Assembly: GCF_000315625.1 (NCBI RefSeq)
Contig: NW_005434673.1
Span: 396,270 to 460,269, forward strand
Source: Guillardia theta CCMP2712
Lineage: Eukaryota > Protista > Cryptophyta
Direction: 5' to 3'
DNA length: 64,000 nt
Of the stretch, positions 5,185-64,000 are shown one piece after another; within the stretch, counting starts at the first letter, position 1, and each line of letters opens with the position of its first letter. The translations under genes were made by a program, and so were the position numbers. A model generated the notes under the pieces. The model did no database searches, was not told the DNA's origin, and saw only the letters and a list, made by a program, of their open reading frames with translations.

Positions 5185-8100
5185 TCAGTTTGGAATCACA
5201 AAGTTGCAAATCTTGCCAGGGACGAAAATCTTCTTCTTGATTTCCTTACCCTAGTGAAGAAATTTCAAACCCAATGAACGAGCAGGGAATTCTCACCTCA
5301 ATCCACTTCTGGACATTCTCGTTCTGCTCAATAAGGGCGATGGCAGCAGCTTGGTCGGCATCAGCTGGGACCTGGACGGCAAGGTCTTGTCAGCTGAGGA
5401 TGGTCAGGCGGCTAGCTAGCAAGTGACTGACCTCGACGGTTCCCTTCAGCTTCCCGTTGATCTGTAGATTTCATGAGGAGGGAAGCAGGAAGGCAAGCAA
5501 GGAGGGACAAGAGGGGCAGGGGAGGGGAGGAGGGACGAGAGGAGCAGGAGAGGGAAGGAGAAGGAGGGAGGGGAGGGGCCCACCTGCACGGCGATATTTA
5601 AAGCATCCTCGACCAAATACTTCTCATTGAACTCAGGCCAAGGGCTAAAAAGTAGCAGTGAGTTGGCAGGAAGAGTAGAGCGATGAGGTTTGCAGTAAGA
5701 CGAGCTGCAGCTGCAGCAGTAGCAGAAGGAGGCCTTGTCATACCTGTTAGACACTGAGGGTTTCTGGCCCAACCTCTCCCAAAGCTCTTCAGCGATGTGA
5801 GGAGCGTAGGGATTGAGCAGTTGGACGAAGGGGATCGCGATGCTCCTGGGGATCGACTTCCTGCCATCATCTCATCAACTCCCTCCTCCCTCCTCCCTCC
5901 TCCTCCTCCTCCTCCCTCCTCGCACCACTTGTAAGCCGCGTTGACAAACTCCATCATGGCAGCGATCGCCGTGTTGAAGCTAAGCTTCTCTGTGTCCTGA
6001 GTGACGCGCTTGATGGTGGTGTGGAGCACCTGGGAGGACGAGGGTGAGTCTGCCTCCCCGCTTGCTCAAGGAGTCACCTTGAGATGCTCCTTCCCAGGCT
6101 CCTCGTCAGTCAGCGGAATGTTGTCCTCCGTGATGAGCCTCCAGGCACGGTTGAGGAAGCGGTACACGCCCTCCACCCCGTTGGTGTTCCAGGGCTTCAC
6201 CTGCTCCAGCGGGCCCATGAACATGAGGTAGAGACGGAGGGAGTCTGCTCCGACGTTGGAGATGACGTCATCAGGGTTGACCACGTTGCCCCTGCTCTTG
6301 GACATCTTGACAGCCCGGCTGAGGACGCGGATCTCGGGCTGGTCCTTGAGGACAAAAGATTCTCCCTTCTTGATCAGCTGGCTCTCGTCGACACTGCGAG
6401 CCTCCATCTTCGCTCGTGTCTTCTTGTGCTCAGGCCCCTGCTCCCCATCCTCGTTCACTTCCTTAGCAGAGACAGCCTTGTCCGTCCCTGCCTCGTAGAA
6501 CACCGTGTGCTCGATGGGGCCGAGGATCAGCCCCTGGTTCACCAGTCGCTGGAAGGGCTCCTTAGTGTGTACGACCCCGCAGTCGTAGAGGACCTTGTGC
6601 CAGAACCTGGCGTACAGCAGATGAAGCACGGCATGCTCGGCCCCTCCGAGGTACAGGTCAACAGGCATCCAGTACTTCTCCAAGGCCGGGTCGATGGGAG
6701 CACCAGGGTTCTCAGGATCGAGGAAGCGGAGGTAGTACCAGCAGGAGCCGGCCCACTGCGGCATCGTATTGGTCTCCCTCCGCACCTTCCTCCCGTCCGG
6801 CAACTGGTAGTTCACCCAGCTGTCGATGGTGGACAGAGGTCCCTCCGTGGTACCGCTGGGTTGGTAGGACTCGACGTCAGGGAGAGTGACCGGGAGCTCC
6901 GACTCGGGGAGGGGATGGGGGGCGCCGTCCTCGGTAAAGACGATGGGAAAGGGCTCCCCCCAGTACCTCTGACGAGAGAAGAGCCAGTCTCGCAGCTTGT
7001 AGTTCACCTTCCCCTGGCCTAGAGACTTCTGCTCCAGGTAGGCGATCGTCTTCGCCTTTGCCTCATCCACCTTGAGGCCGTTGATGTCCAGCTCAGCGCT
7101 AGCTGAGTTGATCAGCACGCCGTCATCCGTGTACGCTTTGGCCTGCACGTCCTCACCACCCTGGACCACCTCCTTGATGGGAAGGCCGAACTTGGTAGCG
7201 AACTCGTGATCGCGTTCATCGTGCGCTGGAACCGCCATGATCGCTCCTGTTCCGTAAGAGCCCAGGACGTAGTCTGCGACCCAGATCGGGACCTCCTCCT
7301 TGGTCAGCGGGTTGATTGCGTACCCCCCGGTGAAAAGTCCAGTCTTGTCTTTCTGCAGCTCTGTCCTCTCCAGGTCGCTCTTCTGCGAGGCCTTCAGCAC
7401 GTACTCCTTTACGGCGTCTCGTTGCTCTGGGGAAGTGACCTTGTCCAGGAGCGGGTGCTCCGGAGCCAGCACGAGGTACGTTGCTCCGAACAGAGTGTCC
7501 GGCCTAGTCGTGAAGACGACAACCTCCTCTGCCCCGTTGCTCTTCTGAGCCCTTGGATCAGAGCTGTAGCGCGGGGACTTCTTCGCTGGCTTCACCAGAA
7601 CTTTCCTCCCTCCCATCTCATACTCCCCGCAAGCCTTCTGCGCATCTTCCTCGTTCATGAACTCGACGAACCCGTACCCCTTGGACCTCTGGGTGTCCCT
7701 GTCGCGCAAGACTCTCGCCGACTTGATGGGACCAACCTTGCCCAGCTCCCTCTCAAGATCCTCCTCAGAGTAAGCCCAAGGGATGCCACCGACGAAGACT
7801 TTCTGATGCTCCACCTCCTCAGTCCCTCCTGTAGCAGCCCCGGACGACTTGACCTTGAAGGAGACCTCGGCTCCTTGGCTCTTCCCGATCCAGTTCCTCT
7901 GCATCTCCTTGACTGACTCTGGCCAATCAAGCTCTTCGAGGTCTTCGAGGAGCCTGTCGGCATAGGCAGTGATCTTCAACATCCACTGCTTGAGGTTCTT
8001 CTTGAACACAGGGTGTCCCCCTCTCTCGCTCTTTCCATCGATCACTTCCTCGTTCGCCAGCACGGTCCCGAGAGCAGGGCACCAGTTCACGGGGACTTCT

Positions 8101-8873
8101 GCCTGATACGCAAGTCCCTTCTCATACAGCTTGAGGAAGATCCACTGGGTCCACTTGTAGTACTGCTCGTCCGTGGTAGAGACCTCTCGCTTCCAGTCGT
8201 AGCTGAACCCAAGGCTCTGCAGCTGCTCCCTGAACCTGTCGATGTTCTTCTTGGTAGTGACGCTGGGATGTGTCCCTGTCTGAATGGCGTACTGCTCCGC
8301 AGGCAACCCAAACGCATCCCATCCCATAGGGTGCATGACGTTGTAATCGTTCATCTTCTTGTAGCGAGAGAGGATGTCGGTCGCCGTGTACCCCTCCGGA
8401 TGCCCAACGTGGAGACCCGCGCCAGAAGGGTAGGGGAACATGTCGAGAACGTAGTACTTGGGCTTCGACATGTCGACCTTCTCTGGCGTCCTGAAGGTGT
8501 CTTGCTCCTTCCAGAACCCCTGCCACTTGCGCTCGATCTCTTGGAAGGGGTAAGCGGAGCTCGTGGAACTTTCCTTCTCCGCCATCTCCACGGATCCACC
8601 ACTCATCATGACAGCATGACGCTGATAGATCGGGCTCCTCCTGAGGGGCAAGGCCGTCCTCATCGTTCCCTTGCATGTCCACGACGCTCTCCCAGTTCTT
8701 ACACTATTTCCAGTGTGCAATTGCGACACAAAACCAGGCAGCTTCCTCGGGTGCAGCGCAGACAGACTGTGCATGAGATGGTCCTGCATGGAAGGGGAGG
8801 GCATCTTGAAGCAGCTGGCAAAGCTCAGCCCCACCGCCGACATGACGCAAGGAAGCGCTCCTAACCCCCGCAT
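5185..8873 (-). CDS. leuS: Bacterial-type leucyl-tRNA synthetase, plastid-targeted, with an inserted RRM domain
   Basis: [18 protein letters not shown] (HIGH), [17 protein letters not shown] and [12 protein letters not shown] (CP1), [37 protein letters not shown] 2.8-kb first exon is followed by six short GT-AG introns leading to [23 protein letters not shown] and [13 protein letters not shown]. The N-terminus is signal peptide plus ASC-F plus a Ser/Arg-rich transit-like peptide. Confidence 0.97.
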
Positions 8874-8949
8874 TGGCGGCCGCCAGACACACTACCAAGA
8901 CCACTGGCCTTCCCTCGTCCCCGCTATGACCAGCGCTCTAAGCCTGGCA

Positions 8950-9360
8950 GCTTGCCCGCCCGGGTGACACATCCGATCCGGGCGGCGATCGGATTGATCT
9001 CGTAGCGGCCCTTCAAACTGATTCAAGTCCAACTCGGACCATAGAGTCACTACTGCCACTCAGACCAATGAGAGTCCACAACGCCGAGCAGATCTTCCAT
9101 AACTTACTGTGACGGGAGTTTACTGTAGACTCTGAGTCAAGAATTTCATACTACTGTTGCCCTCTGCTCGTTTCTCGCCTACTGACCCCTCTAAAGGGGT
9201 TCCCAACCTTGGGAGGCCGGCCCTTGTTTCCTAGAGGCCCCGCCGACCTGGTTGCTTCCGTTTTAGATGCCCCGGGGGGGGCCCGGCCCCCGCGCCTGTG
9301 TTGGCCACTCGGAGCCGGGAGCCCGGCCGGGGGCCCTCATCCCCGCGGGCTCCTGGGCCT
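8950..9360. promoter_or_regulatory. CCGG-rich, GATCGGA-containing intergenic patch between divergent genes (putative bidirectional promoter)
   Basis: cccgggggggg, ggcccggcccc, gcccggccggggg, atccgatccgggcggcgatcggat, agagtcac. Confidence 0.4.
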
Positions 9361-55315: not shown

Positions 55316-58300
55316 CTAGTCCGAGTGCTCTGCGCCTTCTTCCTCCTCAGGAAAGGACTCCAGCGTCTTCATCTCTCTTTTCCGCTCCCTCTTCTGAAAC
55401 CCCTCTCTTCTAACTTCATCAATGCCTGCCTCCTCAGGAACAATCTCCTCCTCACGGCTGGGCTCCTCATTCCCCTGCTCGCTAACGTTCGCAACGTCGC
55501 GTTCTCCTTCGAGGAGTTCTTCTCCTCTGTCCGACTTTTGGTCGGAGCTGCTTCGGCTGCTTCTTTCCTCCTCCTCTTCTCCTTCTTGAGGCTCGTACGC
55601 AGCCCACGCAAGCAGGATCTCCACCAGTCTACCTGCAAGCACATGGAGTCAGAGTCGACAGTGACAGTCCAGTGCTCGTCACGTCGCTGCGCCCTCGATC
55701 TGAACATCTTCTGTAGGGTAGTCTCCCTCCCCATCTCTGCGCACTGGAACCAGGCAATGAAGATCATCGCCATGTCCCTGTCTTGTCGCTTCTTGCGGAA
55801 CAGCTTCATCATGTCCCACTTGGGCCCCTGCTTGCTCAAGTGAGCAACGAGACTGAGTGCACTGATTCACATGCTTCAAGACCTCGAAAGCATCATTCTT
55901 CCATGCGTCATAGCTGTCTCGCAATCTTGTATCAATCAACATCCCCAGCACTCGCTTCATCGTCCTGCCGGCACTAGCAGTTACTTCTCCCCCCACTCCT
56001 TTCCCCTCTCCTCCTTGCGAGACGGATCACCTCCTGGCGTACTCCTCGTTCCTCCACTCCTCCCAAGAGTCCCACATCTTGACACGTCAGACAAGTATCA
56101 TCAGTCAGAGCTGGGTGGCGCGGGATGGGGGACCTTAGCTAGCAGGTCGACGTTGCGGTTGTGGAAGATGGACTGAAAGAAGTTGCGAATCTCATAGTTC
56201 CTGACGATGAACATCTGCCACGCCCGCAGAGCCCTGGGAGGGAAGTGATGAGATAACAAGACGGCGAACATGAGAGGGAGGGAGGGAGGGAGGGAGGGAG
56301 GAAGAAGCAAGAACAGGAATCAACCAGAAAGGTGGGAGAAAAGGAGGTAGGGAGCAGAAGAGGCAAATCACATTGCAAGCGAGCGATTGAGCCATCTGTT
56401 CTTCAACAAGTTTGTGAACTTATCTCTGTCAAGGTTGATCTAGCTCAAACGTTAGGGAACAGAGAATAGAAGGATGCTGCAATAGCAGAGGTTCTACCTG
56501 TTTGTTCCTCTCCCATTTCTTCATCCACTCAGCTTCCTGTCAAGACCGATCTAAGAGAGGAGAAAGGAGGAGGAGGAGGAGGAGCCATCTGTTGACCTGA
56601 GCTTGAAACTCCCGCGCCTGCTTATCCTCGAGGTATCGATTCAGGAGCGCCCTTTCTCGTCCAACGTTGCATGCTGCATCGATGATGACGCAGGCGGCCA
56701 GCGCCTTGCCGGACATCCATGCTCCTTCTACCGAGCACTCGGTGATCCAATCCCCTGCTACACCGATGCCGTTGCCTACAGGAAGGGGTTCACAGGGTGT
56801 TCGGTGGGGGGGTGAAGAAAACTGAGAGGAAGGAACGAGAGAGAAGAGAAAGGGGAGGAGGGAAAGAGAGGGAAAGGATCGGCAGGATGTGGAGGGGGAG
56901 AGAGAGGAGGAGGAAAGACCTGCATCGAAGAGGCAGTACTTCCTCTCCGGCGCAAAGAGCTTCATGTCCATTGCCGACGCGTTGTTTAGCATCGAGCCCG
57001 GCAGGCCTGCAAGTTCCGCATGCTCCCACAGAGACGCTTGAACGTGCGATGGCGTGTGGGCACGCACGTTGATTTCCGTCTCCTCCATATTCGCGCCGGC
57101 TAAGGCTAGAGGGAGGAAAATCTGCAAGAATAATCAGGGCAGCATGAAGGGAGGAGGGAGGAGGGAGGAGGGAGGAGGGAGGAGGGAGGAGGGAGAAAGA
57201 GAAGAGGAGGAGGGAAGAAGAGGAGGGAAGAAGAATAAGAAGCAGGGGAGGAAGCAAGATCAACCTCTGCCGTCTTCTCAGCCACATGGTTGGGGCTCGC
57301 ATCTCGATTCATGTTCGACCACGAGGAGGACAGGACTATCATCCAAACATACGTGAGACTCTTAGTGCTGCTGCGGTTCCCTCCTGCTTCTCCTGCTCCT
57401 CCCGCTCCTCCCGCTCCTCCACCACTCCCCTTCTTCTGCGACCTGAGGTACTCCGCCTCTGCCGTGATATCCCAGAAGCTGACGATCTGGGGGTCACCGA
57501 GCTGAAACGCCTCCTCCTCCTCCTGCTCTGCGTCCCTCTTGGTTCTCCTTCGCTGCTGCTCATGGCGGTGCCGCCGGTACCTCTGCAACGCATCGTTGAG
57601 GGTTTTGCGAGAAAGACGGCTGCTCCCCTCCTCTTCCTCTGCGAGGAAGTCGAGGAGCAGTTCGATCTCCTCCTCCAGATAGCCCAGCATTGACAACTTG
57701 GAGGCGATGGAAGAGATCTCGATGAAGGTCGTTTCATCCTCCTCCTCCTCCTCTCTCTCCCCCCTTCTCTCTCCTGAAACCTCCTGACGTTGCTTTCGCC
57801 CTCCCTCCCTTTCCTCCGTCCACTCCAGCAGCATGTGGAAGAGGTCTTCGATGGAGGTCTCGAGGTCGAAGGGGGTCAGCGAGGCTCTGCCTGGAGCAGC
57901 AGCGGGAGGGCTGGGCTGAAACACGTCCTCCTGCATCATCCGCGCATAGATATCTCGCTCGAGGGCAGGGAGGTGAAACGAGCCCTGAGGAAGGAGAGAG
58001 ATATCTTAAGGTTGAGAAGAGGAGGAGAGGGGAGGGGAGGGTTGGGAAGAGTGGGAGGATAGAGGAGCGGGAGATGGAGGAGGAGGAGGAGGAGGGAGGG
58101 CAGGGGAGCTAGGGAGCAGAGGATAGAGAGAAGGGCAGAACAGGTAGGAACGAGGAGGGTGAGGGGAAAAGGAGCATGACCTGAAGAGAGATGGGAGGGA
58201 GATGGTCGAACTCGATGGTGACAATCCATGCAGGAAGCATCTCACACTGAAAGCAAGATGAACGAGAGCTAGAGAAGCTGCAGCGAGAGGGGGGGAGATG

Positions 58301-61300
58301 GGGGGCCNNNNNNNNNNNNNNNNNNNNNNNNNNNNNNNNNNNNNNNNNNNNNNNNNNNNNNNNNNNNNNNNNNNNNNNNNNNNNNNNNNNNNNNNNNNNN
58401 NNNNNNNTCGGCCTCAGGATGCTGATCCCAGGATAGGATCGGACATGTCGGGCATTGTCTTGTCGCCTGTCATGGTCACCGGGGTGGCCTACCTAGTCCC
58501 TGAGGGTTTAGTCAAGTTTACCGTTCGCAAAATGGCGAAAGACTTTCTCCACGCTACGCATACATAGGACTACCGATTTCCAGGATGTCACGTGGCAATG
58601 TCCGGGCGGACAGGGGGGCAGGAGGACAGTAGAGAGGAGGGGATGGGAGGAAGGAGGATAGAGGAGAGGACGAAGAGAGAGGAGAGGGAGGAGGGGGAGG
58701 ACGCGGGAGAGGAGCAGAAGCTTGAGAAGAGCAAACCTTGCTCGCTGTCTTCATGATGAAAGATGACTTGGGATGAACTTTGTTGAGGATGTTAACAACA
58801 TCGCCCGGGGGTGTGCAGACACAGACATAGTCAAACTTCAAGTTTACAGCCTCCACGCCCAAGGCCGAACTTCGACGCCGATCGCCCGGCATGCCACTGC
58901 CACCTGCTCCCTCCTCCTGATCCTCCTGCTCCCTCCTCTCTCCCTCTGTACCTCCGTTGTCCTCCTGCTCCTCGCCCGCACGGACATTCCCACGTGACAT
59001 CTTGAAATCGGTAGTCTTATGCATGCGCAGCAGCGCGAGGGCCTCCGACGTCCTCTTGCCACCCGCGATGTCTTCCTCGTTCCCCATCATCTCCATCCTC
59101 CTCCGCTTCTCCTCCCCATCACTGCCCTGCTCCTCTCCCCCCCGTTTCTTCGGGGAGGAAGAGACCAGCTCGACCTCAAACTTGTCCTCTGCAAAATTCC
59201 TCCTCACATGGCGCACTTGACAACCCCGACGGACGTCCGACCCCTCCAGCATCGCATCCACCACCGTCTTCAGCTGCGGTTTCCCCGCAAACAGCAGCGT
59301 GCTCTCCCCCATCCCCCGCGACGCCTGCGCGCGCTCAAACCCCCCTGGATGAGCGAAGCGATGGAGGTATGGCCTGCATGCTACATCAATTCCCTGCTCC
59401 CAGCTCTTGTCTTGCTCTTCCTCGTTGTCTATGTGATCCATTCACGTCTCCTTCATCTGCTGTTCCTCTCACTCGCGTCTTTCCTCGTCTCCTCTCTTCC
59501 CAAATCATTATTCTTCTATCCTCCTCCTCCTCCTCCTCCTCCTCCTCTCCTCCTCTCCTCCTCCTTTACCCTGTGATGTCGAAGTCTCCGATGCCGCTGC
59601 TTGACTCAGTGGACGTTGACTCCAGGAGGGCGCGGAGGTTGTCGACCGCTCGAGCCAGCTGAACGAGCTCGGGGCCAGACAAGATGCCCCTGAAAGTGCA
59701 TGAGCCATTGCCGGGCAATGCAAATGCAGCTGAGAGGTGGACTAAAGAGAAGGAGGAGGAGGAGGAGGACAAAGAGGAGAAGGATTGGGGGGGGAGGAGG
59801 AGGATAAAGAGGAGGAGGAGGGGGGGGGATCGTGGTGGTGATGGTGGGCAAGTCGTTACTCTTCTTTTGCTCTTTGGTAATCTTGCTCAGCGCGTTGAAG
59901 CGCGAGACCTGTCTTCACGTCAGGATGGAGGAGGAGGAGGAGAGGAGGAGGAGAGGAGGAGGAGAGGAGGAGGAGAGGAGGAGAGGATGAGGAGGAGGAG
60001 GAGGAGGAGGAGGAGGAGGAGGAGGAGAAGGCGAAGGAGGAGGAGGAGGAGGAGGAGGAGGAGACTGTGGCTGCTTACCGGCATCGGAGGGAGTCTCAAG
60101 CATGCGATCCCACATGAAGCCGGAGATGCGATCAGCATGAGGCCCTCCGCTCAAGCTCTCCCCGTCCTTAGGCCCCATACGGATGTACCTGTCACAGCAG
60201 ATGAGAAGGCGGGGAGAGGGAGAGAGGAAGATGAGGACGAAGCTGCTGCTCCTGCTGCTGCTGCTGCTGCTGGTGGTGGTGGAAGTGTTGGTGGAGGTGT
60301 TGATGGTGGTTGTGATAGCGATAGTGATGTTGATGAGATTTTCTCACTCTCGTGCAGCTGACAGCACGTAGGGGTTCGACAGGTTGAGAGGAAACGCGTC
60401 AAGCCTGTAGCTCTTTCCCGTCGTCTCCGTCATCCCGATGGCTCGAGAGGACCCGAAAGGGACGACGATCCCTTTTCTCACCCACTTGTCCACCTGCTCC
60501 CTAAACTCTCCTCCAACCGCGCTGAAGAAGCGGCAGCCGGAGAAAGAGTGTCCTCCACCAATCTTGTGCTTCACGCTCCTGACCCTCCCCCCTGTCTCCT
60601 CCCCGGCCTCGAAGACCGTCACTCGGATCCCAGAGTTCTCTCCCTTCCTGCTCAGGTACGCTGCGCACGAGGCCCCCGCTATCCCTCCTCCGATCACCGC
60701 CACGTGCACCAGGCTTTCCCTGCTGGGGGGCCGGCGGAACTTGGGATGGGCGGGAAGGGAATGAGGGAAGTGCTCATACATCTCGTCGCTGATCAGCACA
60801 TCCTCCCTTGCGATCTCCTCTCCTGCGGGTGGGCCTCCCCCCATGCCCTCCCAGTACTCCGGCGGCTCCTTCCCTTGCTCAACCCAGCGGACGCTGATGT
60901 ACTCGTTCACTTTGATGAGCCTGGACGGGGAGGAACATCAGTCCCTAGAGCATGCGGCCAAGGAAGGGGATCAGCAGCAAGAGTAAGGAGAGGAGAAAGA
61001 AAACAAGAAGCGGAGAGGTATACCAAGAAAAGAGGGGGGTCAAGGGGAGAGGAAAAATCGAAACTGACCTGCGGACAAAATTTCCCACCCAATCCGCACA
61101 AGCGTCCAGCTCAAACTGGTTGGAAGTTCTTCCCACCCAGACCCAAAGCAGCGAGTCTCTGAGCTCTAGGAAGGAGTAGGAGGAAGGATCCTTACGAGGG
61201 TCCCCGGAGGAGTTGAGGAGGATGAAAGTGTCCTACGAAAGTGGATAAGACGCTGGCCACAGCTCGTCCAACAGACTCACCCCGCTGTTGAGCGACTTCC

Positions 61301-62780
61301 ACGTGGGGCTCATCCACTCAAGCCGAACGTCGAGAGCTGCTCCTTTGAATCTTCCCAGCTTCCTTCCCCTTGATAGACACGTCATTCGACAGCAGGGAAC
61401 TCTCGTCAGAGGGCATACGTCGGAGGAGGAGGCTGGATTGATTTTGACAACCTGTACGCCAAGCTCTTGTTCCAAATGTGGTTGACGTTCGCTTGTATCA
61501 TGCACCTTGTCTTCATGGTCATTCTCTCGTTCAAACAGCTCGCAGCTTCATCTTCATCACCTTAGTCCGGTCAGGTACCAATGCTTCCCACCCTCGTCTC
61601 TCCGCAGCCTTAGCGTGAACCTGTTCTCCCGTCACCACAGCACACGTCCACGACCCTTGCCATGACCTCCCCTCGTTCAGGTTGACTGACATGGCATTCT
61701 TTTTTGTGTTCCTTGTCAACTTGACAATGTCGAACTCTCAGACAAGACAAGGAGGGTGAAAGCAGGACAGACCTCCACGTTCTCTTCAATGAAGTTGAAC
61801 GAGAATTCCTCCATCTCCTCGAAGTGTCCAGTCCACAATGCAACGTGCACTCCAGTGACCTGCTACAGGTGAACATCCCTGACTCCGTACTCCAGCGTTA
61901 CCGACACTTTGATGTCAACACCTTCAGGAAACTCTTTGGTGGACGGCATCGGCATCCCTTGAGTGGGGCGGTCGCCGAACCCGGAGTTTAAGTCCGCGTT
62001 GCCGATGTTGTCTTTCTCGGCTTTGTTCTTCTCTTCTCTCTTCTGTGACCTGAAGTTGAGCTCTGCCTCCAGCACCTCTCTGAGTTTAAACTTATGCTCC
62101 ACATATTCATCGAGCGTTGGGGCCCTCAGTTTGGCGGCAGGGATGAAATCAGGCCTTGATGCCATCATCTGCTGATGCTGCTTCAACGGTTCAGACGCGT
62201 CTTTACCCCAACAGAAGAAGGACCATGAGATCTTTCAAGTGCGATTCAGAGTTGGTGAGTTTCAAGCAACGTAGAACTCCTTCCTTGCCATCTGTGACGT
62301 AGTTTGCTCCGAGTTTGTGATCGTCCGCATAAGCGAACAGCCATGCATTACGCAGGTTACAAGCAGCTGCTTGCTCCTGTCAAGATATCAGGAGAAAGAC
62401 GATGTTGCTCCACTTGCTCAGATGGTAAGAGGCGGCACCTGCTCTGCTTGAAAGTAACTTTTTACCTCAGCCCCGTCTGTATTGGAATCCGGGAAGCCCA
62501 CAGGCTCCTTGGGTGACGTCAGAGTCTCGCAGCACCGCACGCTTATCGTCTTGAAGTCTCACTCACCTCGCTCAGGGGGATCTCCTCGCAGAACTCGTAC
62601 AGGTCTCCTATCTTCACCTGCCAGAAGCTCAGGCAGTCCCCGATACCAACGGGTGGTAACCATGAGCTTGGCACGGCGATGACGCCAACCATTACCAATG
62701 ATCATCCTCCTTGGCACAGGCTCCTTCAGACGTCACTTCCTCTCCTGCTCTGCTGCTTCCCCGCTCCCCTCCTGAGCAAC
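55316..62780 (-). CDS. Large multi-exon protein: gelsolin repeat, renalase-like FAD-dependent oxidoreductase and a C-terminal helical Trp-spaced region
   Basis: Spliced KSLNSG|DTFILL...LWVWVGRTSNQFE...VEQGKEPPEYWEGMGG; VAVIGGGIAGASCA...VTVFEAGEETGGR; FDYVCVCTP; GVAGDWITECSVEGAWMSG; ALRAWQMF, DSYDAWK. The gene spans a gap and its start is uncertain. Confidence 0.75.
58308..58407. other. Assembly gap (100 N)
   Basis: Run of N. Confidence 1.
59927..60062. repeat. (GGA)n imperfect intronic microsatellite
   Basis: Direct reading. Confidence 0.9.
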
Positions 62781-62983: not shown

Positions 62984-64000
62984 ATGAAGGGAGCAGTGGG
63001 CATCCATGGCAGTGATCGAGCAGGACCAAGGAAGATATGCTGGCGCTTAGGGCAAGATGCATGTTTGATGCGTCTAGCGACAACTCTGATGTATCCTAGA
63101 AGCATGTTTGATGCGTCTGGCGACAACTCTGATGTATCCTAGAAGCATGTTTGATGCGTGTAGCGACAACTCTGATGTATCCTAGAAGCATTTTTGATGC
63201 GTCTAGCGACAACTCTGATGTATCCTAGAAGCATGTTTGATGCGTCTAGCGACAACTCTGATGTATCCTAGAAGCATGTTTGATGCGTCTGGCGACAACT
63301 CTGATGGTCATCGCTGAGATCTTTCTTTGCAGCTTCAAAGGATGTCGGCCGCCTTCGAACTTGCCCGCACCTCAGAGGAAGAGCGAATTCAGGACCTCTC
63401 CATTTCCAGCTCGATCAAGACCTTGCAGGGCCTGGTGCTGCAGCTCACCTCGCACCTGTGAGCATCGAGGTCTGACATCTTAGCAGACTTCCACGATCAT
63501 TCCGGAGGCGAAGAAGAAACAGGTCACAGCTCCTCAAGAGCCCTTCTTCGGAGTCGGACTTTCCGTGTCTCACAAGACTCTGGTGAGTGAAGGCGCAATG
63601 CTACGTGACTTGACGTTGTGTGCTCAGCAAGTTGAGGATGTCGTGCAAGGCTGGGCCTCTGCAAGCTGCGGGCTGATCTGCGTCGGCGACCGGCTGTTGT
63701 CTATCGATGGGAGGGAGGTCGAAGACATTGAAGATGTCAAACGACTCATACCCGGGAGGTTGATAGCAACCCTAGAGCACAACAAGATGTGAGCGCGTGT
63801 CAGGTTGGGAACGTATGTGATAGTTGAGCTCTCGCGCATCGAGGGGGAGTTGAACAAAACATTCAAGGTACTTTTCGGACGTGTCAGCTCCTAAGACTTG
63901 TTGACACCCATCCAGGTCGAACTGATGCGAGGGAATCCTACTTTTCTGGAGGTTTATGAGAAGCATGGGCAACTTCTTTATCAAAACGAGAAATTGTATG
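62984..64000 (+). CDS. PDZ-domain protein, 5' part; runs off the window
   Basis: FFGVGLSVSHKTL|QVEDVVQGWASASCGLICVGDRLLSIDGREVEDIEDVKRLIPG|VGTYVIVELSR. Start uncertain. Confidence 0.7.
63059..63306. repeat. 43-bp minisatellite, about 5.7 copies, probably intronic
   Basis: atgtttgatgcgtctagcgacaactctgatgtatcctagaagc starts at 63061, 63104, 63147, 63190, 63233 and 63276. Confidence 0.95.

Follow-up and report, generated by a model that had tools for sequence, protein, structure and literature searches.

The window analysed here is the whole 64,000-nucleotide stretch of the Guillardia theta genome introduced above (G000:C1:396270-460269), and all positions refer to it unless a contig is named. 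This DNA is eukaryotic, spliced and contains many low-complexity runs. On the minus strand, from ~62705 to ~55650, lies a gene of at least 12 exons encoding a protein of ~1300 residues. From its N- to its C-terminus the protein consists of an N-terminal region, a single gelsolin-type repeat, a short linker, an insert-rich yet complete flavin adenine dinucleotide (FAD) domain of the renalase family and a C-terminal tail with periodic tryptophan (Trp) residues. A preliminary description of this DNA had placed such a fusion at 56680-61400; the locus was right, and the gene proved longer, as blocks shared with an orthologue from the Tara Oceans metagenomes reach to ~62705 and ~55650. Exon structure was read from the DNA and each junction was then verified by script, whilst sequence and profile searches used single exons or uninterrupted relatives as queries, and whole-genome searches covered the 87.1-Mb G. 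theta assembly. Rfam gave no match over the window, and open reading frames (ORFs) on the plus strand over the locus had no significant match in Pfam.

The repeat is spread over three exons. The end of exon a (61281..61373, 5′ limit approximate) encodes its first part, RKLGRFKGAALDVRLEWMSPTWKSLNSG, which finishes in SLNSG at the donor GTGAGT. Intron 1 (61233..61280; 48 nucleotides, GT..AG), with an in-frame TAG at its end, separates it from exon b (61069..61232), which encodes the central part, DTFILL...LWVWVGRTSNQFELDACADWVGNFVR. Beyond intron 2 (60921..61068; 148 nucleotides, GT..AG), exon c (60348..60920) opens with LIKVNEYISVRWVEQGKEPPEYWEGMGGG, carries the last gelsolin strand and helix (VRWVEQGKEPPEYWEGMGG) and runs stop-free through the linker (SDEMYEHFP...P) into the start of the Rossmann fold (GGGIAG, VFE, GGR; VAVIGGGIAGASCA...VTVFEAGEETGGRVRS), so that the last piece of the repeat stands beside the Rossmann motif in one exon. 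The mechanical ORF end at 60344 is not the stop of the protein, because the TGA at 60346-60344 falls within the splice donor aga/GTGAGA. The motifs quoted in the earlier reading were all found again on the minus strand.

For relatives, a small profile built on the gelsolin-Rossmann junction region was used in an exhaustive search. The proposed search for the same architecture was productive, since it is present in a G. theta paralogue, in a Tara cluster and in Hanusia phi. The paralogue, matched by exon c, is an intronless ORF of 1137 codons at locus C12 that is 100% identical to GUITHDRAFT_103078. Its domains in Pfam are EF-hand, Gelsolin (1.3e-9), NAD_binding_8 (1.5e-9) and Amino_oxidase, together with a weak zinc-finger match, and it has its own orthologue in H. 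phi (EukProt 763303-Hanusia_phi.AAC.11, 78% identical). The window gene shares ~30% identity with it, and the two are collinear from where the gelsolin repeat begins as far as GDW...VEGA.

In 49 clustered proteins from marine metagenomes of ENA (P0012/P0162, 821-874 amino acids), the N-terminal region, repeat, linker and Rossmann motif share one ORF, and a further relative (P0194, 892 amino acids, 86% identity) has the same uninterrupted architecture. Apart from members of its own cluster, a word search with the Tara orthologue returned a single relative, at 86% identity. On the 32.9-kb Tara contig L005, the ORF at 5823-8288 carries the gelsolin repeat and Rossmann motif, and downstream ORFs continue the gene with ARGMG..LLFRG, FDYVCICVP, VPMWTVVMEFEHPV, AAWIVFTNATWSSQN, FLWPEA and HCLFDPASGLGVAADW..VEGAWVSG, followed by the tail. 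Against the whole G. theta genome, the Tara proteins matched the window locus best (7e-33 for exon c, 2e-15 for exon i, and 4e-5) and the C12 paralogue second; they are therefore orthologues of the window gene. In H. phi, the transcriptome-derived P0005 (EukProt, 353 amino acids), which was the best hit of the profile search once the paralogue cluster is set aside, covers exons a to c, with gelsolin repeat and Rossmann motif in one contig. The claim that repeat and flavin domain belong to one gene is thus upheld by the shared exon c, by the single ORFs of the Tara proteins and the paralogue, and by the one transcript contig of Hanusia.

The linker motif, (S/A/P)DE-x-x-E/K-H/V..P, is kept in both subfamilies. 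The window gene is the second of two old paralogous lineages sharing a gelsolin-linker-renalase core. As core and linker are conserved across both subfamilies and across species, the fusion must be older than the duplication and is under constraint.

The remaining exons are, like the first three, collinear one by one with the paralogue and the Tara orthologue, and the latter bears out both the chosen limits and exons d, f and g themselves. Intron 3 (59690..60347; 658 nucleotides) has much (AGG)n/poly-Pro-Ser low-complexity sequence. It is followed by exon d (59570..59689), GILSGPELVQLARAVDNLRALLE...DFDIT, whose split codons GAG and GGG fit and which matches Tara SGKELATLAHSIENLRL...DFAFQG by eye. 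Exon e (58737..59373) encodes the middle of the renalase-like domain, with SRGMGESTLLFAGKP..., an acidic insert and FDYVCVCTPP (58835-58806, minus strand), and matches the paralogue and the Tara ORF at 8295-9230 by tblastn. Exon f (58181..58246) encodes CEMLPAWIVTIEFDHLPPISLQ, matching VPMWTVVMEFEHPV in Tara and KPVWVVLVTFSHPV in the paralogue. Exon g (57265..57984) holds a long acidic insert and then the W..(A/S)..WS block YVWMIVLSSSWSNMNRDASPNHVAEKTAE; this aligns to Tara AAWIVFTNATWSSQNAWRSSPEVANLVSE, which in turn aligns to residues 220-249 of renalase 4zcc. Exon h (56920..57121) contributes …HVQASLWEHAEL…KYCLFDA, and exon i (56597..56775) closes the renalase-like domain, carrying its C-terminal FAD-binding motif NGIGVAGDWITECSVEGAWMSG. 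Throughout exons a to i, all introns are GT..AG, phases are compatible and there are zero stops (script check), the codons split across junctions being AGG, GAG, GGG and GGC. An alternative exon, SYVCVAWRKSFAILRT (58566-58519), was rejected, 58246-58181 being the piece that matches the orthologues. An alternative donor, SLT/gtatgt (~57350), was also rejected; the residues after it align to the orthologue.

Intron 5 (58247..58736 as assembled) holds an assembly gap at 58308-58407. The end of exon e (58737) and the start of exon f (58246) are both in phase 0 and give the junction FIMKTASK/CEMLPAW. The Tara orthologue is uninterrupted here (FILTAARDAQTVPMW), with a residue count from F to W equal to that of the window junction and none missing. 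Because the two counts are equal, no coding sequence is expected in the gap, and from this collinearity we infer that the gap is intronic and that the reading frame is preserved across it. Loose ends at 58244 and 58636 beside the gap were considered as a bridge and rejected, having been traced to chance or low-complexity matches of 18-20 nucleotides to G000:C1:794.9 kb. The exact matches (58225-58244 and 58636-58655, 18-20 nucleotides) both lead to G000:C1:794.7-795.0 kb, ~340 kb away on the same contig; one of them is purine-rich low complexity, and the pair is an odd coincidence. Read joints at 57528/57529 were disregarded, their 20-letter sides lying in low-complexity sequence.

Several lines of evidence bear on the nature of the repeat. 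The exon a part aligns to residues 359-393 of the paralogue and to Tara RNSVMGRFKGHSKAVKLEWLPESHWRQLNDG, and all three pieces from the window can be aligned, column for column, to the Pfam-positive repeat of the paralogue, whose Hanusia orthologue is also matched by Pfam Gelsolin (6e-9). A profile of both subfamilies (A2) found villin at 7.5e-34 and gelsolin at 4.5e-33, in a range to 1e-32, and single domains at 1e-10. With a profile of the window subfamily only (A3; 45 positions, in effect the C-terminal piece), the top 20 hits in PDB were all gelsolin-family proteins, the best at 4e-4. The Tara orthologue alone found villin at 0.0028. When its repeat was modelled with AlphaFold2 (AF2), the elements came in the order expected for gelsolin: strands, long helix (105-125), strand, short helix. 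The predicted local distance difference test (pLDDT) score of the model has a mean of 68; most core blocks reach 83-91, the long helix drops to 59 at its end, and an insert has <50. The best 50 Foldseek matches listed from PDB are all gelsolin, severin, villin, fragmin, adseverin, CapG or archaeal gelsolin-type (2DGel) structures, of which 49 have probability 1.00 and the other, CapG 1j72, has 0.82; for single-domain targets, target-normalised template-modelling (TM) scores reach 0.71. The insert has 13 residues in the window and ~50 in the Tara orthologue. Exon b holds an Asp and a Glu that align with residues of the gelsolin type-2 Ca2+ site; in the profile alignment, SLNSGD contributes the Asp and NQFELD the Glu, where the long helix begins, and these fall on the GD and DE of villin, the type-2 Ca2+ ligands of gelsolin. 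Taken together, these data support a gelsolin-type repeat, with the corresponding fold predicted for the Tara orthologue, and the strong gelsolin signature of the preliminary description is thereby corroborated.

The flavin domain begins in exon c, which matched NAD_binding_8 (3.1e-11), DAO (2.1e-8) and Amino_oxidase (1.2e-6) in Pfam; exon i matched the C-terminal end of Amino_oxidase at 0.023. The FAD-binding beta-alpha-beta motif is present, with GxGxxG, an acidic end of beta-2 and GGR, as is the C-terminal FAD motif GDW...VEGA..SG, here GIGVAGDWITECSVEGAWMSG at ~56770-56700 (GIGVAGDW...VEGAWMSG), which aligns to residues 296-320 of 4zcc. An Atlas feature search with exon c gave generic FAD/NAD-binding family calls only, and the same exon alone matched many proteins of the amine-oxidase fold, with renalase at 8e-4. 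A profile of the whole flavin domain (A4), dominated by the paralogue subfamily, found the bacterial renalases 3kkj (8.3e-30) and 4zcc (3e-29) over residues 3-320 of 336. All its other hits were ~20 orders of magnitude weaker than these and confined to the N-terminus, the best being protoporphyrinogen oxidase at 7.7e-9. The C-terminal half of the Tara domain alone had renalase as its only hit (1.3e-4), in an alignment that takes in the W..at..WS and GDW..VEGAW.SG blocks, and the only PDB hits of window exon i alone were bacterial renalases 4zcc/3kkj (0.041). The domain measures ~800 residues, its extra length coming from acidic inserts of low complexity that exons e and g encode, and the Tara orthologue has inserts at the same places. 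Membership of the renalase family is supported by these matches; the earlier identification as a renalase-like FAD oxidoreductase holds, A4 matching 3kkj/4zcc over their full length.

Outside this core, the gene was traced through the Tara orthologue. The N-terminal region (61866..62705, limits approximate) has its likely start, MIIGNGWRHRRAKL, at ~62705. In tblastn, residues 7-15 of the Tara ORF matched 62690-62664, residues 17-31 matched 62617-62573 and residues 55-99 matched 62376-62242, the last with 42% identity and an E value of 3e-5 when the whole window was searched, or 3e-7 in the upstream stretch. A PMPS..GVDIEVSV block matches ~61960-61900. Conservation with P0162:1-450 can be followed over 62705-61866, for example in AWL.A.....LG....TDG..G.LRCL.L. 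An Atlas search with the N-terminus of the orthologue gave no usable neighbour, and neither the N-terminal nor the tail region had anything significant in Pfam. The exons of the tail (55657..56536, limits approximate) carry the blocks EAEWMKKW, RALRAWQ, LRDSYDAWK and GPKWDMM...IAWFQ, which are collinear with the Tara tail in weak tblastn matches (E 0.001 for two). In the Tara tail itself (L005:10899-11477), Trp occurs six times at a spacing of 32-33 residues (positions 21, 53, 86, 118, 150 and 182), and the blocks LRDSYDAWK, RALRAWQ and IFIAWFQ at ~56536-55657 of the window are collinear with this array. The contexts DAFSYWK and KIFSSWE in the Tara tail recall Sfi1-type centrin-binding repeats. 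Upstream of the gene, at 63055-63306 and ~350 bp from its likely start, lies a tandem array of a 43-bp unit in 5.9 copies with 96% matches.

We conclude that the locus probably holds a real, intact, nuclear and intron-rich gene of G. theta in which a gelsolin-type repeat is fused to a renalase-family flavin enzyme. A number of observations weigh against this. No read or contig bridges the gap at 58308-58407, and the exon limits at both ends of the gene are approximate. The RNA run yielded 4 reads in the ~6% of the run that was read, and these carry no evidence of splicing or strand. The other three runs (X1-X3) are low-coverage genomic DNA; they were judged genomic because their contigs run through introns, and their size and word share fit low coverage. 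The Hanusia contig also reads through both small introns. As for the repeat, Pfam Gelsolin had no hit on the three separate window pieces and stayed below threshold on the Tara orthologues and the intron-retaining Hanusia sequence. The proposed scan with profile models gave matches for NAD_binding_8 and Amino_oxidase in exon c and none for Gelsolin on the pieces; because Pfam misses these, the gelsolin call rests on the alignment with relatives, the profiles and the orthologue's fold model. The fold model is that of the Tara repeat and not of the window's, its input alignment included the paralogue subfamily, and it contains a disordered insert of 48 residues. Finally, the large acidic inserts in the flavin domain might impair catalysis.

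For an intact fusion of this kind, a mode of action can be sketched. The flavin domain would act as a renalase-type oxidase, passing a hydride from a reduced substrate resembling a pyridine nucleotide to FAD and then electrons to O2, giving hydrogen peroxide (H2O2). PMC5655536, with reference to Moran et al., describes renalases as oxidising 2- and 6-dihydro isomers of nicotinamide adenine dinucleotide (phosphate), NAD(P), with O2 to NAD(P)+. The gelsolin-type repeat would place or gate the enzyme through a response to Ca2+, through binding to actin, or both. An EF-hand link would be built into one lineage, and the Trp tail of the other could bind a centrin- or calmodulin-like protein. Tentatively, the two lineages may then form an old, duplicated cryptophyte family of Ca2+- and actin-linked renalase-type oxidases, in which the repair of pyridine nucleotides or the local production of H2O2 would be tied to the cytoskeleton. 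The actin gene of G. theta is itself interrupted by an intron.

A clearly less likely alternative is that the repeat makes no contact with actin and works instead as a Ca2+ switch or as an adaptor between proteins, regulating the flavoenzyme intramolecularly. The gelsolin-like domains of Sec23/24 act as adaptors. The window repeat is single, divergent and below the Pfam threshold, and is broken by an insert both here (13 residues) and in the orthologue (48 disordered residues). Moreover, conservation of the linker to the Rossmann motif in both subfamilies suggests a fixed intramolecular arrangement, and the repeat retains an Asp and a Glu that align with the type-2 Ca2+ site. However, the best matches in both sequence and fold include actin-bound domains of the G1 type.

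An actin-linked oxidase might also work as MICAL does, the flavin domain directly oxidising actin once the repeat has docked on the filament. MICAL joins a p-hydroxybenzoate-hydroxylase-type monooxygenase to a CH domain and oxidises actin. The architecture here is analogous, an actin-binding-type module joined to a flavoenzyme, and a renalase-type oxidase would presumably release H2O2 beside the binding partner of the repeat. However, the flavin domain is of the renalase/amine-oxidase type (8e-30/3e-29 in the profile search), FAD_binding_3 reached only 0.026, below the cut-off, and Pfam found no CH or LIM domain in the window pieces scanned or in the orthologue. Moreover, the substrates of renalases are small dihydro-NAD(P) isomers (PMC5655536). 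Direct oxidation of actin is hence unlikely, and the comparison with MICAL drawn in the preliminary description does not extend to the class of enzyme.

It is very unlikely that the gene in the window is only a silent or decaying duplicate of the functional paralogue. The few RNA reads, the many low-complexity inserts and the unbridged gap would suit such a pseudogene, as would a word-index protein search in which exon c, set against candidates of 108-345 amino acids, had no hit and recovered no G. theta gene model. Against this, GT-AG ends and phase are preserved in all eight introns from exon a to exon i, and the exons are free of stops. A closer inspection of the Hanusia sequence points the same way. 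Exon b is 85% (46/54 residues) and exon c 86% identical between the two species with no indel, whereas the counterparts of the introns are ~20% identical (27 against 48 nucleotides, ~19%; ~240 against 148 nucleotides, ~21%). In sequence, the pattern is one of conserved coding exons between drifting introns. The locus is also transcribed in Hanusia, and a separate lineage of orthologues persists in marine metagenomes. Most improbable of all is that two adjacent genes, one for a small protein with the gelsolin repeat and another for a renalase-like enzyme, were misread as one: an in-frame Met (DEMYEHF) lies in the linker upstream of the Rossmann motif and RNA reads are few, but exon c has no stop between the parts, and junction and linker motif lie inside uninterrupted ORFs of the Tara orthologues and the paralogue.

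Returning to the fusion as an intact gene, its conservation in two paralogous lineages and several cryptophyte-like organisms suggests that the place or activity of the enzyme may depend on actin or Ca2+. Renalases are otherwise small stand-alone proteins whose physiological role is still debated. The fusion offers a concrete handle on the function of this family and may reveal a link between redox chemistry and the cytoskeleton that is independent of MICAL. For annotation, there is now an exon model for an intron-rich locus, with the assembly gap placed in an intron.

Two further metagenomic sequences from ENA stand near the family. P0006 (218 amino acids), a relative of the paralogue subfamily, has a weak Ank_2 match (3.9e-4, below the cut-off) just upstream of the linker and Rossmann motif; an ankyrin match in the place of the gelsolin repeat could reflect an exchange of domains or an artefact of calling ORFs across an intron. 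In P0065 (311 amino acids), which is more distant, a gelsolin-like end, FEQGEEAQEFWKLL, is joined to a Rossmann start, and the gelsolin-Rossmann core may extend beyond the two Guillardia lineages. Full-text searches of the library consulted found no paper joining gelsolin with renalase in one protein, and no relevant paper on gelsolin-domain proteins of Guillardia. Both domains are already well known; what appears to be new is their combination, its two lineages and the insert-rich form.

Compared with known systems, the gene has its closest counterpart in GUITHDRAFT_103078, with which it shares the gelsolin repeat, the conserved linker, the renalase-family domain and collinearity of the whole core. 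The paralogue is intronless and has a pair of EF-hands at its N-terminus and TRAF/Sina-type zinc fingers at its C-terminus. In contrast, the window gene has at least 12 exons, another N-terminus, large acidic inserts in the flavin domain and the Trp-periodic tail, and the pieces scanned with Pfam contain no EF-hand or zinc-finger match. With gelsolin, villin and severin it has in common SLNSGD-F-IL, LW-W-G, the long helix with E...A, E-P-EFW...GG and the fold predicted for the orthologue. Those proteins have three or six repeats, whereas the window protein has one, which is divergent, carries an insert and is fused to an enzyme. The flavin domain resembles renalase (4zcc/3kkj and the human enzyme) in its GxGxxG start, acidic beta-2 end, GGR, W..at..WS and GDW...VEGAW.SG. 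Renalase, however, stands alone at ~340 residues, whereas here the domain has ~800 and is fused to the gelsolin repeat and other regions. The likeness to MICAL goes no further than the general notion of coupling a flavoenzyme with a module of the actin-binding type. The one is an aromatic-hydroxylase-type monooxygenase and the other probably an oxidase of the renalase/amine-oxidase fold; the actin module also differs, and no homology was detected between the two.

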